DNA of 64,000 nt from Oikopleura dioica (Eukaryota > Animalia > Chordata). The position numbers and the translations under genes were made by a program. The notes under the pieces were generated by a model, which ran no database searches, had not been told where the DNA came from, and saw only the letters and a program-made list of their open reading frames with translations. Position 1 is the stretch's first letter; each line of letters opens with the position of its first letter. This document shows positions 44,645-50,939 of this stretch, in pieces. The DNA is taken from contig OU015566.1 of NCBI GenBank assembly GCA_907165135.1, positions 14,074,001 to 14,138,000 of the forward strand, given 5' to 3'.

Positions 44645-45438
44645 CTATTTGGAGTCGCGATCTTTCACGTGTCCGGCTAGCCATGCGATGCCTTCGATAA
44701 TGCCCGTCTAGAAATGTTTTTCCTACTGAAATCAAGGAAGAGAAACTCACCTTATTGATATCTTCTTCTATCGCATTCGACGAAACGATGTTATATGTTT
44801 TTCCTCGTAGCAGTTTCGGAAGATCCAGCAGCTGGGTTATTTCAACTTCTGAACACGAGTCTGCCAGGTCCATTTTATTCGCGAAGAAGAGAAAGACTGC
44901 GTTGTTCTTTTGTATCGAGCTGTCCTCTAAGAAATTGTTGGAAGGGATGAAAAAGGGCCTAAATATCTTGCTCTGAGAAAAAAATGCTTCATTCAATAAA
45001 CTCAAAAAACTAAAGTGAGCGGTTTCGTAGCGAAAAAAATACGGTCGCGATGCGCCCGGAGCCCAGATTGAAGATAAACGACAACAACTTACTGAGAATT
45101 CCCTCAAGCTCATCTTTTGCAACTGCCATCCTCAACCTATCAGCAGAATCGATTACAAAGATCACCGCCTGGGCGTCCTTGTAGTACATTTCCCACATGT
45201 TCCGATACCGCCCTTGTCCAGAAAAGTCCCAAACTGTAAACTCCAGTCCGCCAGCTTGGAACTTTTCGGAGACAAAGCCGACTGTAGGGACGATTTCTTC
45301 AGACCTCTGCTTCGTTTTTGGCGGCTTGAGGCGGTTTATAATTGTTGTTTTGCCGGAGTTGTCGAGGCCGACGCAGACGACCTTGGCTTCAGGCTTTTTG
45401 ACGCCGAAGAGGAGGAGAATTTTATCGAGCAGACCCAT
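44645..45438 (-). CDS. ARL6: ADP-ribosylation factor-like 6 (BBS3)
   Basis: [60 protein letters not shown]. Confidence 0.93.
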
Positions 45439-45722: not shown

Positions 45723-47352
45723 TTACTTCTGAGAAGTGATACGAATATCCTGCAGTTGGATATTCGTCTTGTAGGCTCTAGCAGATGGTCTTTTATTGTG
45801 GAGAGCTGGGTTTGACGCTGACTGACTTATCCGAGGATCAGTACTTGCCCATCTTAGAAAAGGATAGCAAAGATAAAGCTACAAACGACTCACTTCGTGG
45901 ATATGTTTTTGCTTGTTGTTACATGCGTTCTTGTCAAATTCTCCGCAGTTTCTTCGTTCAGCGGATTCATCGGATCATACCCTCTCCGATCTCCAGGGGC
46001 GGTCCGATCAGTAAGGTCCCTGTAGTTGTCCTTGAGTCTATCATTGTGCTTTGCAAACTCAAGATAATAGCACAACGGGCATTGGTTGGGAAATCGGCTT
46101 TCCCGCTTCTTCAACATTTCAATATGGCCAAGCGCGCAGATTCTGCAAATTCTAGCCGTGTGAATGCACTTCGAAAACACGTCATTCATCGGCACAATAA
46201 TCGACACTGGTCGCTTGAGCGTACACACGGTGCATTCGGCGTTTTCGACTTCTAACTTTGGCGTTTGAAAACGATCCCGGCTGATGATCCCTGAAGCGAT
46301 GGAACCGACATCGTCCAGATCTTCTCCGACAGGAGTTTGGAGTTCCGATCGATCTTGAATGACTGGAGGTTGATTTGGCGACCTACGAAAGTAGTCCATC
46401 ACTTTGGCTCGTTTATCAGTGTCAGGGAGCCGGTGATAAGTGCCAATAACCGGTCCATTCATCGGATGATACTGCTGCTGCTGCTGAAGGTAAATCTGCC
46501 GTGGAGGAGTTTGAATGTCGCGATCTGGGTGGGGAACTTTATTTTCAACCTTCAGCTGACCCATTCTCATAACTACAATAGCATGAAACGCGCTCTAGAA
46601 GTTTTTCTTTACTACCCATCGAATGGTCGTTCTCCGGAGTGGAACTACTCATGCGTGTCGAAGAATTGTGCTGGGGAAAATTAACCGCCAATTGTCTCTT
46701 TCTCTCTTCTGGGACGTCTTTTGTTCTGATTGCAATCCTTGATTTTCGTCCAATTCCTTCACGCGTTTTCTTTTCGTCAAGACTTTTCCAGAGCGGCTAG
46801 GAAAAATGATACAACGATGAATTGTGAGAGGAACTAACCTGTAAGAGCTTGTAAACGAGATTTTTCTTTGCCGTTCGTTTATCCCCGCCGACATCGCCCT
46901 TGACCTTCGGTTCGCCGTCGTAGTAAGCTACATGTCCGTTCGATGTCTTTTCTCCTCGGATAAGCTCCGTCTTGATCTCAGCGCCGAGTCCATTAGCAAG
47001 TTCTACGAGAAATTTAGTCAGTAGCATTTAATTATAGCAAACCTAATATATCCAACGCTTTCTCTCGAACATACGTCTCTGGAAACTGAATCGACGCAAT
47101 CAAATTGAAAGCTGCGGAATAGAGCGCTTCTCGTTTACTCGATCCATTTCCCTATCAAACATGACATGAGTTCAATTCTGAAACAAGTACCGTGTACAAT
47201 TCGTCCAAATACTCGAGCGAAGCGTTAAATCCTTGAGCATTCATTCCTTCCTTGAATTTGAAAAACTCGCGCCACGAGCCACCACCGATCGCCACGATTA
47301 TCTGCATTGAATATTTATCGTTCCATTCTGGATACCGAGCGTCAGGCGACAT
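45723..47352 (-). CDS. Two divergent dsRNA-binding domains fused to a C-terminal RING-like finger
   Basis: GNGSSKREALYSAAFNLI and GGDKRTAKKNLVYKLL dsRBD-like ends; CTVC...CIHTARICRIC...CPLC RING-HC spacing; in-frame stop just upstream of ATG 47352; last exon tentative. Confidence 0.65.
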
Positions 47353-47538
47353 GCTTTCTTATTTCGATTCTTCTAAAAAGAGGAGCTCAGTTAGTTTTTC
47401 AATCGAATCTGTTTATTTTATTTATCAGTCGTAAAAATCATGGAAGAAATGGTTGTGAATCCATTATGACAGGTGGGAATCTGAACTTTTGGGATCTCTG
47501 TAGCGACAACTGGCGGTCAAGAAAAGGCAGTTTTCTTT

Positions 47539-49461
47539 CTACTTGTAAATCTTCGAAATCGAATCATCAATCTTGAAATCGACCGAGCACCATCTAAAAA
47601 TCAATCAGTTTACGAAAAGTTTTCAGGGAAAGGGACAATTAAAACAAGAAGCAACAAATGATGCAACATTCCAATTAATATGTTGTCTCGACGGACTAGT
47701 CACGAAATGTACGAAAAAATTAATACTGAGTATGAAATTAAAATAATGAAAGCTGTGACAGAGTAATCATACTTGGACGAAATTGCAGATACAGCATCGT
47801 CTCCTTGATTTCCAGCGTCAGAACGACCAGTTACGTAGCCAGAAGTTTGAGGTTCGTTATGTTGAATTACTGTTGCATCTCCGTCGGGCGACGTTCCCTT
47901 CTGAGTCTGTTGAAGAAGTTCTAGATGGCTCAGATGCTTTTTTAGCGCTTCGATTTCTTTCGTTAGCTTGTCCTCGCTTTTGTCCGGCGAAACTGCTTCT
48001 GTTTTATAATCGCTCAAAAGACTTTCACTTTCGTACGAAACCCCAGAGTCTCGCTTCGATTCCAGCTTGTCAATTTCATCGTAAAGTGTTTCCTTTCTCT
48101 TGTCCAAAGCTCCATTTATTTCGCGCTTGAGGCTGGTCCATAGAGGTTTTAAAAGATTGAAGACAAGATTTTTCTTTGCTGAGGCCTTGCTTTGAGAGAT
48201 TCTACCATGTTCCATCACGCCAGGAGCCAAGTACTTGCATTGAAATTTTTTCGTGCCATCAACCATCACTTCTTCGACTCGGATGTTATCTCGGTTGATT
48301 GGACAACCATTTCGAACAGCAAATTCTAAAAATATGTGAATATAAGATCATAAAGTGGGAGAGATTTCTTACCGAGGATTGCCATGCAGTTTTCTTCAAG
48401 GAATCTATCTAGTCCGTCGAGACAACATATTAACTGGAATGCCGCATCATTTGTGGCTTCCGATTTTCCTTGTCCAATTCCCTAAAAAGATCTTAATTCG
48501 AATTCATCTTCAAAGAAAACTTACCCTGAATGTTGATCCTTCGTAAATGAGTGTAGCATCGTATTTGCCGTCTGTGAGTGCATTCAGCTTGAGTCCAAGA
48601 ATGTCTTTCCAAGAAGCACTTTTTGCGAGTGCGGTCAGAATTGGAATGTAATAGTCGCTATTCCAGTGAGGGAATCTGCCTCTAACGGTGCTCGCTCTTG
48701 AGCCAGTTGAGACTTCTACAGGAGGGCCACTCTTGATTGAGCTTGAAGGAAGGCTTGAGAATGATAGCTCCGTCGAGTTTGTCGATGTCTTCTGCGGTTC
48801 CGGAACAATTTTTATGATCGGCTCCTTCAAAACAGCAACAGGTTCAGGTCTGATAGGACTCATGGGTGGAGATTTCTTCGGTTGAACTCGTACCGCGGGT
48901 CGTTGTGGAGAAGAATTAGGCGTGACCGGCAAATTTTCATTGGCGAAGGTTTTGTCCATCTCTTTCCAGAGAGGCGAAAGAAGCTCGTACGCCAAGAGTC
49001 TCTTTGCATCCTTCTTGACGGCATTTCGAATCTCCAAATCGCTACGGCCAATGTAAGTAGCAACGAATCCACCAGCCGGTGCAGGATTGATTCTCATTTT
49101 ATCAGCCAGAATTCCAGCCCCTTCTCGATTCGCAAGCTCTTAAGAAATTTTAAGTTTGTTAAAAATTATCATTATTACCAAGAAACTGCAAACTATTTGC
49201 CTTCACTATTTCCCGCAAATTTTTGAATGTCTTGAGTAGTTTGAAGGACGCACGATGCTCTGCCTTTTTCTTGCTACTTCCTACTCCTTCAAATGTCTTT
49301 CCATCGTTCTTCAGGCGAACCAAAAACTCATGCTCACCAACTCGCTGTTCTGTAAGCTGGAATTTCGATTTCCAATCACATCCCTTAGCGAGCTGAATAA
49401 GAACGAGCGTGGAATATTGATCCGACCACTTTGGGTACTTGCTCTTTGTTTCTTCGGTCAT
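47539..49461 (-). CDS. Protein with four dsRNA-binding-like domains (two tandem pairs); 3' end tentative
   Basis: FEGVGSSKKKAEHRASFKLL (canonical dsRBD motif), VKKDAKRLLAYELL, GIGQGKSEATNDAAFQLI, SQSKASAKKNLVFNLL; repeated (Y/F)PxW lead-ins. Confidence 0.7.
47627..47699 (+). repeat. Inverted 73-nt copy of the exon segment at 48409-48481 with its own TTTTCAG acceptor
   Basis: 62/73 identical by manual alignment; last 25 nt identical (TTAATATGTTGTCTCGACGGACTAG). Confidence 0.85.
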
Positions 49462-49780
49462 CAATCCTTCTACAAGTGAAACATGCAAAATCAATTCCGA
49501 CAAAATGCAATAATCCACGAATGCGAATTATAAACAACAAGTTGTTTTTTGGGTAATCTTTTATTTTTTCAACCATCACCAGACAGAAAAAAGTGAGGGG
49601 AGGAGTAAAATTGGTACAGGTAGGTTCTGAGAAAGAATCTGGCTTCTGGGCAGGGAGGAACTGGTTCGGAAAAAGTAAGAACTTTTTGGAAAAAATTCAA
49701 TTGTGCACCGATACTGGGGTTTTTAGGAGAGAAGGGGGAGCGAAAGAGGGCAATTTTTAGGAGAGCGACATTTTGCGATT

Positions 49781-50939
49781 TCACAATTTTGCTTTGAGCA
49801 TGGCATCGAGCTTTTCAGCGTCGTTGGCGAATCGGACGATGCCATTGGAGAGGAGATCGACGGCGCAAGGGTCGGTGTTGTGTTCCCATCGGAAGGCCGC
49901 TTCGTCCAAGGATACCTTATCCTGAAAAAGCTGTCAAAAGAGAATCGCTAGAAGCTCGACTGACCTTGGAAGAGTTCTTGGCCTCTTCAGAGCATAAGTT
50001 TCTTGGCAGGTTGTTCGTCTCGCCATCAGCCTTCAAGTTCTCCAGCAAAGAAGGAGCAATGGTCAGCAAATCGCAGCCAGCAAGAGCCTTGATTTGTCCA
50101 ACATTTCTGAAGGAGGCGCCCATGACCTGGGTGTTGTAGCCGTGCTTCTTGTAGTAGTTGAAGATGTCTCGGACGGAAACTACTCCTGGGTCTTCTTCGG
50201 AAGGACCGTCTTTCGCGAAGTTGCCCTTTTTCACATGCCAGTCGAAGATTCGACCGACAAAGGGGGAGATAAGCGTCACTCCAGCTTCGGCACAGGCGAC
50301 TGCTTGGGCGAAACTAATGAATATTGTTGAAAAGGGGACGTAATCAAGCTGACTTACGAGAAAAGAAGAGTCAGGTTGCAGTGGATTCCCTCTTGCTCTA
50401 GTTCTTTGGCGGCTTGAATACCTTCCCAGGTTGAAGCGATTTTGATGAGGATTCGTTCTTTGCCTGAAAAAGATGGTAAACAGGATCTTTATCTGGTCAG
50501 ATAACGTACCGACTCCTCGCTCTTTGAACAAATTGATGATTCGGTGAGCTCGTTTGAGAGTCTCTGCTTTGTTGTAGCTCAATCGAGCGTCACATTCGAC
50601 GGAGATTCTTCCTGGAATCTTCTCCAAAACTTGATTTCCAACAGCGACAAAAAGGTGGTCAGCAGCAATGGCGAGTTTGTCATCTCCTTCGGCTTTCTTA
50701 GCGTATTCGGCAGCGGCTTCGATGTGCTTATCATATCCTTAAAAGGTTGAAAAGGAGAAGGGAAGATAGACATTACCTTCAACCTTCATGGCAGCGAGAA
50801 CAAGTGAAGGATTGGTAGTAGCGTCGGTGGGCTTGTAAAGATCCATGGCAGAGAAATCGGCAGTGTCGGCAACAACAGTGGTCAAAGCCTTCAGGCTTTC
50901 CAAAGCGTTTTCGTGTCGGGTCTTCTTAGTTGGGGTCAT
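49781..50939 (-). CDS. TALDO1: Transaldolase
   Basis: [57 protein letters not shown]. Confidence 0.97.

Follow-up and report, generated by a model that had tools for sequence, protein, structure and literature searches.

ADAR2 acts on its own pre-mRNA (self-editing), and both Microprocessor, on the DGCR8 mRNA, and bacterial RNase III, on rnc, self-regulate through structures in their own mRNA. The locus described here lies in a window of 64,000 nucleotides (the whole stretch of Oikopleura dioica DNA that was analysed, contig OU015566.1, forward-strand positions 14,074,001 to 14,138,000, within which window positions are counted from 1). As with DGCR8 and rnc, the gene encodes a dsRNA-binding protein and carries a long, predicted double-stranded element in its own transcript, and in its host protein it recalls ADAR2 self-editing, although that protein lacks a deaminase domain. 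Whereas the DGCR8 and rnc elements are local hairpins of the 5' UTR or coding sequence that are cleaved, the duplex predicted here joins an exon and an intron over a range of 700 nt.

Conserved long-range complementary boxes modulate alternative splicing in Drosophila and human genes (PMC2724269, PMC8052449, PMC7797038), and among the docking and selector sites of Dscam1 conservation is far stronger in one partner than in the other (PMC12962786). Likewise, the pre-mRNA of the present locus contains a pair of complementary segments separated by hundreds of bases, of which one lies in a candidate alternatively processed intron. The intronic element is conserved above its surroundings, with a one-sidedness like that of the Dscam1 docking site, and stops 12 nt short of the last intron's branch-point-like motif, with both arms in one primary transcript. 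Its arms, however, are about 80 nt long where such boxes usually measure 10-30 nt; they are an inverted duplicate of the gene's own exon and acceptor, with one arm coding; and the candidate event is retention of a terminal intron, giving a hydrophobic tail rather than a soluble end. In splicing boxes both segments are expected to be conserved, whereas here the exon arm occurs in forms that are 13/80 apart.

A second comparison is with the editing-site complementary sequences of ADAR substrates, such as the GluA2 Q/R site and insect nAChR alpha6 (PMC3553965, PMC1919356). Here too an exon is predicted to pair with a conserved downstream intronic complement in a duplex available only before splicing, but synonymous sites in the exon arm change fast and A·C mismatches are lacking. 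The locus thus differs from both classes in its length, its origin from the gene's own exon and acceptor, its one-sided conservation and its host gene.

Gene model and the terminal intron

Comparison with L010, a sister-clade transcript, shows that two apparent upstream 'genes' of the window form a single minus-strand gene with about four dsRBD-like repeats. Its features are as follows.

48525-49461, minus strand: exons 1 and 2, with the ATG at 49461, dsRBD 1 (Pfam dsrm), repeat 2, a linker and the N-terminal half of repeat 3
49139-49178, minus strand: intron 1, 40 nt
48482-48524, minus strand: intron 2, 43 nt, GTAAGT...TTTTTAG, its homolog kept in L010
48373-48481, minus strand: exon 3, 109 nt, the GxGxxK...AA helix part of a third dsRBD-like repeat, assigned by resemblance to repeat 1
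48409-48488, minus strand: upstream arm, comprising the last 7 nt of intron 2 with its TTTTTAG acceptor and the first 73 nt of exon 3, encoding GIGQGKSEATNDAAFQLICCLDGL
48326-48372, minus strand: intron 3, 47 nt, phase 1, missing from transcript L010 but found in genomic L011 and L012
47773-48325, minus strand: exon 4, a fourth dsRBD-like repeat and a coiled-coil region, ending ...AISSK at the donor AA/GTATGA
47594-47772, minus strand: last intron, 179 nt, holding the tail ORF, the inverted copy, a branch-point-like CTGAT (47604-47608) and the acceptor TTTTTAG
47700-47772, minus strand: intron read-in ORF, a hydrophobic tail ...K YDYSVTAFIILISYSVLIFSYIS, with its stop TGA at 47700-47702 followed by CTAG
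47620-47699, minus strand: downstream arm (the inverted exon copy), within the last intron, beginning 1 nt past the TGA of the read-in ORF
47539-47593, minus strand: last exon of the spliced form, (K)WCSVDFKIDDSISKIYK, stop TAG at 47539-47541, matching the L010 C-terminus WASTDLGIDDSISKICAKRK
47412-47422, minus strand: a pair of AATAAA poly(A) signals past the last exon

Protein searches were made per exon or per single ORF, not on the spliced, joined protein. Repeat 1 (ORF 49159-49518, minus strand) matches Pfam PF00035 dsrm (30.9 bits, cut-off 23, E=4e-7), and the sister-clade protein likewise matches dsrm above the cut-off; the two exon pieces of repeat 3, searched separately, gave no Pfam match. 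By eye, the exon that carries the upstream arm resembles repeat 1 (TFEGVGSSKKKAEHRASFKLL versus TFR/GIGQGKSEATNDAAFQLI), with the basic KKxAK residues largely lost, and the homolog of exon 3 in L010 reads GMGQGMKQATNGAAFHLVCLLDGL.

Related sequences came from two routes. Exact-protein look-ups gave close lineages as marine-metagenome contigs (L003 and L004, with 87-90% amino-acid identity, and L005 and L006, with 78%), and a profile search gave distant relatives (41-44% identical proteins, n=4). Further lineages were sought in JGI metagenomes by a DNA pattern scan and a protein-guided scan, and none was found. That relatives turned up in marine metagenomes only, together with the 64-Mb genome and introns of 40-48 nt, agrees with an Oikopleura source. 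L010 is without two introns found at the same places in genomic L011 and L012, and is therefore a partly spliced transcript. It retains the 41-nt intron before the arm-exon homolog (L010:1089-1129), which holds an in-frame stop, while two downstream introns are spliced; even where a clade lacks the inverted copy, then, that preceding intron may be slow or regulated. Separately, a segment of about 80 nt at the 3' end of this contig (1881-1960) is repeated exactly at 2093-2172, probably an assembly artefact or a sign of alternative 3' ends.

At the last intron, L010 joins ...VDSK to WASTDLGIDDSISKICAKRK at a junction where L011 and L012 have an intron. At the protein level, P0008 (on L010) ends ...VSSVDSK-WASTDLGIDDSISKICAKRK, and P0006, P0007 and P0009, from genomic contigs, end ...VSSVDSK-YDLFLKTLIFPKLLPVLVFFCVYVLNS. 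The donor AA/GTATGA (exon end 47773) and the acceptor TTTTTAG/A (exon start 47593) are present in the window, and donor, acceptor and last-exon ORF are conserved across all lineages compared. Because of the L010 splice junction and these conserved splice sites and last exon, we place the copy inside the last intron. The same evidence led us to drop a placement in the 3' UTR, just past the true stop, which is valid for the retained-intron form.

The long minus-strand ORF at 47700-48269 reads into this intron and stops at the TGA at 47702-47700, one base before the copy. Among the close lineages the tail ORF has indels of +3 and -3 only and its stop position is fixed, while L011 and L012 differ in it by 10 synonymous and 4 nonsynonymous codon differences. 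Whole-codon indels, a fixed stop and a synonymous excess indicate that the tail ORF is coding. The spliced form ends in a conserved soluble peptide, W.S.D..IDDSISK, and the retained form in a peptide predicted to be hydrophobic and tail-anchor-like. On these sequence comparisons, both the hydrophobic tail and the soluble IDDSISK end appear to be under protein-level selection, and the natural reading is that the last intron is facultative, with a conserved choice between retention and splicing.

The stop of the tail ORF invites a translational explanation, in which UGA-CUAG and a helix 1 nt later would drive readthrough in retained-intron mRNA, adding a 29-codon extension, LVRRDNILIGMLHHLLLLVLIVPFPENFS. 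UGA CUAG is a stop context that has been associated with readthrough (10.1101/2021.04.18.440353); (T/G)TGACTAG is invariant, and the extension frame is open in all lineages. A 29-codon open frame is, however, about 25% likely by chance, of the few substitutions in the extension most change the amino acid in that frame (3 nonsynonymous versus 1 synonymous), CTAG is simply where the copied exon piece ends, and the sister clade has the same tail stop without the copy. We consider readthrough highly improbable.

Origin and conservation of the inverted copy

A repeat search paired the arms at 47620-47699 and 48409-48488 (80 nt each, 709 nt between them) at 85% complementarity, that is 68/80 positions, or 74/80 when G·U pairs are counted in minus-strand RNA. 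The match that the earlier note had described was reproduced, with 62/73 exon bases matching the copy and the inner (last) 25 identical. Its claim that the copy keeps a TTTTCAG acceptor at the boundary holds in the window, where that motif is aligned opposite the exon's TTTTTAG, and fails in one lineage, which has TTTTCGG. Read on the plus strand, the copy translates as GKGQLKQEATNDATFQLICCLDGL. A plus-strand exon using the copy's TTTTCAG was considered and rejected, given TTTTCGG in L005 and L006 and no supporting ORF context.

A whole-genome search of the 64.3-Mb assembly found the exon and one inverted copy only, the latter at E=1.8e-18. With two genomic copies and such a score the repeat is neither a chance match nor dispersed, which rules out a dispersed repeat or mobile element. 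Because the copy contains intron bases, it appears to derive from a duplication of genomic DNA. The earlier note had traced it instead to a once-coding paralog on the strength of codon-like divergence. This origin is not supported: the copy is an 80-nt fragment with 7 intron bases and sharp homology ends, differences between the arms are spread 3/3/5 over codon positions, and nearly all lineage-specific change falls in the real exon rather than in the copy.

The copy was found in all four contigs of the close lineages (L003-L006), which are independent assemblies. It differs from the window's copy at 1-3/80 positions (96-99% identical), against 9-20% in coding sequence and up to 42% in the small intron; in the near lineage the figures are 1/80 for the copy and 9% for coding sequence. 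Differences between the window and L005, the far lineage, are distributed as follows.

Inverted copy: 3/80
Adjacent exon 4: 111/561 (p=1e-4)
Intron 3: 22/52 (p=4e-8)
3' UTR: 27/85

The 26 nt between copy and acceptor are similarly conserved (1/26). In the sister clade the last intron is 118 nt long and has the same tail ORF, with about 33 nt from tail stop to acceptor, which leaves no room for the copy. The copy thus appears to be a lineage-specific insertion that arose after the split from the sister clade and before the close lineages diverged, and since then it seems to have been kept nearly fixed by selection.

A functionless, neutral relic of a local inverted duplication would sit well with the genomic origin of the copy, intron bases included. 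Such a relic would hardly show 3/80 differences where neighbouring introns and UTR show 32-42%, nor be present in four independent assemblies, and we regard this explanation as extremely unlikely. A copy that stays near-unchanged in related lineages is probably functional, and may well work as an RNA switch rather than persisting as a dead relic. The earlier note had held that a copy absent or decaying elsewhere, or lying outside the transcript, would refute its reading; the copy is instead near-invariant in other lineages and intronic, within a downstream intron of the same minus-strand gene as that note had proposed.

Predicted pairing with exon 3 and the variable exon arm

In the predicted minus-strand fold of 47590-48520 the MFE and centroid structures both pair the two arms (z=-7.4), in agreement with the intramolecular duplex first suggested from the sequence. 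For the arm-arm duplex the predicted energies are -116 kcal/mol (minus-sense RNA) and -96 kcal/mol (plus-sense RNA). Read in the sense direction, the copy forms a long, pyrimidine-rich tract whose end lies 12 nt before the branch-point-like CTGAT. No local structure was found in the copy or the conserved block (z -0.2 to +1.9 on both strands; copy +0.6 to +1.9), so the copy is available for long-range pairing. An Rfam search gave no match in the conserved block and only two sub-threshold chance matches elsewhere; with the local-fold z values, this led us to reject a local hairpin, miRNA precursor or known RNA family. The conserved 65 nt past the arm have no partner that beats shuffled sequences (best -36.5 versus a null of -38.3); the branch point, the acceptor and the coding last exon account for their conservation.

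Among the partners predicted for the intronic copy, the second best lies in a neighbouring gene. A tandem paralog with dsRBD-like repeats is directly downstream (window 45890-47352, minus strand), its ATG at 47352 being 21 nt past a TTTTTAG acceptor-like site and about 60 nt past the AATAAA signals of the upstream gene, a layout that looks like an operon with trans-splicing. A cysteine-rich, RING-like ORF at its C-terminus (45890-46570) had no Pfam match. The homologous exon and acceptor of this paralog (47071-47160, minus strand) are predicted to pair with the copy at -50.9 kcal/mol, against shuffle bests of -40.8 +/- 2.9, and a 29-nt, 72% complementarity between copy and paralog exon recurs in L003. 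If both genes are co-transcribed, the paralog exon could compete with the main duplex. The genes flanking the pair, 49917-50939 and 45010-45438, share its minus strand and by eye, from ORF translations, resemble a transaldolase and an ARF-like small GTPase.

While the intronic arm is almost frozen, the exon arm varies. L007-L009 and L004 reveal two classes of exon-arm haplotype that are 13/80 apart, with a three-base codon change from CAA to TCG among the differences, against 5% in the exon just upstream (p=0.0012), so that the exon arm changes about three times faster than flanking exon. Between the window and the L007 haplotype there are 12 base changes in the exon bases of the arm, and only 2/24 residues are altered. 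Most of the haplotype changes weaken pairs with the frozen copy, and several transversions break them. The exon arm is not co-conserved, and pairing alone therefore cannot explain the frozen intronic arm. The haplotype classes also recombine with flanking variation, L004 combining a window-type arm with an L008-type downstream exon, which suggests gene conversion with the copy or balancing selection.

Several patterns nonetheless point towards pairing in the sense RNA. Each of the six transitions between the arms (6/6) leaves a G·U pair if the minus strand is transcribed and an A·C mismatch if the plus strand is (p=0.016), and the window carries a change that turns a G·U into an A-U pair. L005 and L006 show one double change, from A-U to G-C; of the far-lineage exon arm only 22 nt are known. 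The two exon haplotypes, for all their 13/80 differences, have near-equal predicted duplex energies of -116 and -114 kcal/mol. Gene conversion between the arms could yield some of these pairing patterns, including the double change in L005 and L006.

These observations bear in opposite directions on the idea that the copy is kept for a sequence role independent of the exon, either as a pyrimidine-rich splicing enhancer or silencer or as a protein-binding 3' UTR element of the retained-intron mRNA, its complementarity to the exon being a mere trace of origin. The strong asymmetry of the near lineage, with 1/80 differences in the intronic arm and 13/80 in the exon arm (p=0.001), fits such a role, as do the position of the pyrimidine-rich tract 12 nt upstream of CTGAT and the equal conservation of the adjoining 26 nt (1/26). 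It leaves unexplained, however, why every transition is G·U-compatible on the sense strand only, why two very different exon haplotypes reach equal duplex energy, and why L005 has its double change; 80 consecutive frozen bases are, moreover, rare for protein-binding tracts. We judge an exon-independent role unlikely, though well worth weighing.

We would give about the same modest weight to an ADAR substrate, with the copy as an editing-site complementary sequence and adenosines of exon 3 or the intron edited before splicing. Editing here would recode the protein, or would mark and retain unspliced RNA. An exon with a downstream intronic complement that is more conserved than coding sequence is the classic signature of such elements (PMC3553965, PMC1919356), and the genome encodes an ADAR-type gene in which dsrm repeats lie directly upstream of A_deamin exons. 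At this locus (L015, G000:C5:15297421-15300807) dsrm matches at E=2.6e-13 in two stretches, followed by A_deamin exons at E=1.7e-31 and 3.1e-40. A second A_deamin locus, on C2 (L016/L017), yielded no dsrm from the scanned ORFs and is possibly ADAT1-like. Furthermore, 4/12 of the window's exon-arm changes relative to the copy are A-to-G, leaving G·U pairs, and this pattern together with the fast exon arm would fit a genomic hard-wiring of edited sites. Known conserved recoding sites, however, have unusually conserved synonymous sites around the edited exon, whereas here the exon arm changes fastest; the count of A·C mismatches in the sense duplex is zero.

A duplex of about 80 bp with a perfect 25-bp core might also serve as a source of small RNAs of the endo-siRNA type, cut from unspliced or retained-intron RNA (on the gene model, the only RNA in which the duplex exists) and targeting the gene's own mRNA. 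For small-RNA production there would be no need to keep one arm frozen and let the other drift, and we think this explanation very unlikely.

A candidate switch in the last intron

Our preferred reading, quite plausible if short of probable, makes the copy an intronic, exon-complementary element by which splicing of the last intron is set against its retention. A multi-dsRBD gene would have gained an inverted duplicate in its last intron, and selection would have fixed it there. In the pre-mRNA an imperfect helix of about 80 bp would arise between the copy and exon 3, which lies about 700 nt upstream. Left unpaired, the copy would present an exposed pyrimidine-rich tract near the branch-point-like CTGAT; the helix would hide this stretch just upstream of the branch point and would put the 5' splice site in a 709-nt loop, at the opposite end of a rigid helix from the branch point. 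On this geometry the paired state should favour intron retention. The earlier note had spoken of an exon-masking duplex, a wording that is doubtful, since transcription passes the 43-nt intron beside the exon arm about 700 nt earlier than it reaches the copy.

Formation and melting of the helix would then set the ratio of retained to spliced isoforms, retention giving a hydrophobic, tail-anchor-like end and splicing a soluble one. Proteins that bind dsRNA, possibly including the gene's own product, could stabilise the helix. A double constraint, from pairing and from recognition of the intron element, would account for the frozen copy; and if selection acted on the stability of the whole helix and not on individual pairs, the exon arm could drift while the energy is kept. 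The helix in vivo and any feedback loop are our inferences, as is the effect on splicing, which we draw from geometry. The fullest version, in which a dsRNA-binding protein reads an ~80-bp helix derived from the exon for part of its own RNA-binding repeat and so switches itself between membrane-anchored and soluble forms, in an arrangement frozen across cryptic species, strikes us as doubtful, with a considerably smaller chance of being right than the splicing role itself.

The setting gives the element its interest. The genome is extremely compact, with most introns about 47 nt long, and the extra 80 bases of this enlarged intron are the best-conserved part of the locus, which makes them a strong candidate for a functional RNA element. 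They sit in a gene for a dsRNA-binding protein, at the very intron that would decide between two conserved protein ends. The locus offers a small, testable case of how local inverted duplication of an exon can create long-range RNA structure that is then kept by selection, and it illustrates the use of marine metagenome contigs for testing the conservation of non-coding RNA elements in animals. If the proposal is correct, one small inverted duplication would have made a self-sensing isoform switch.
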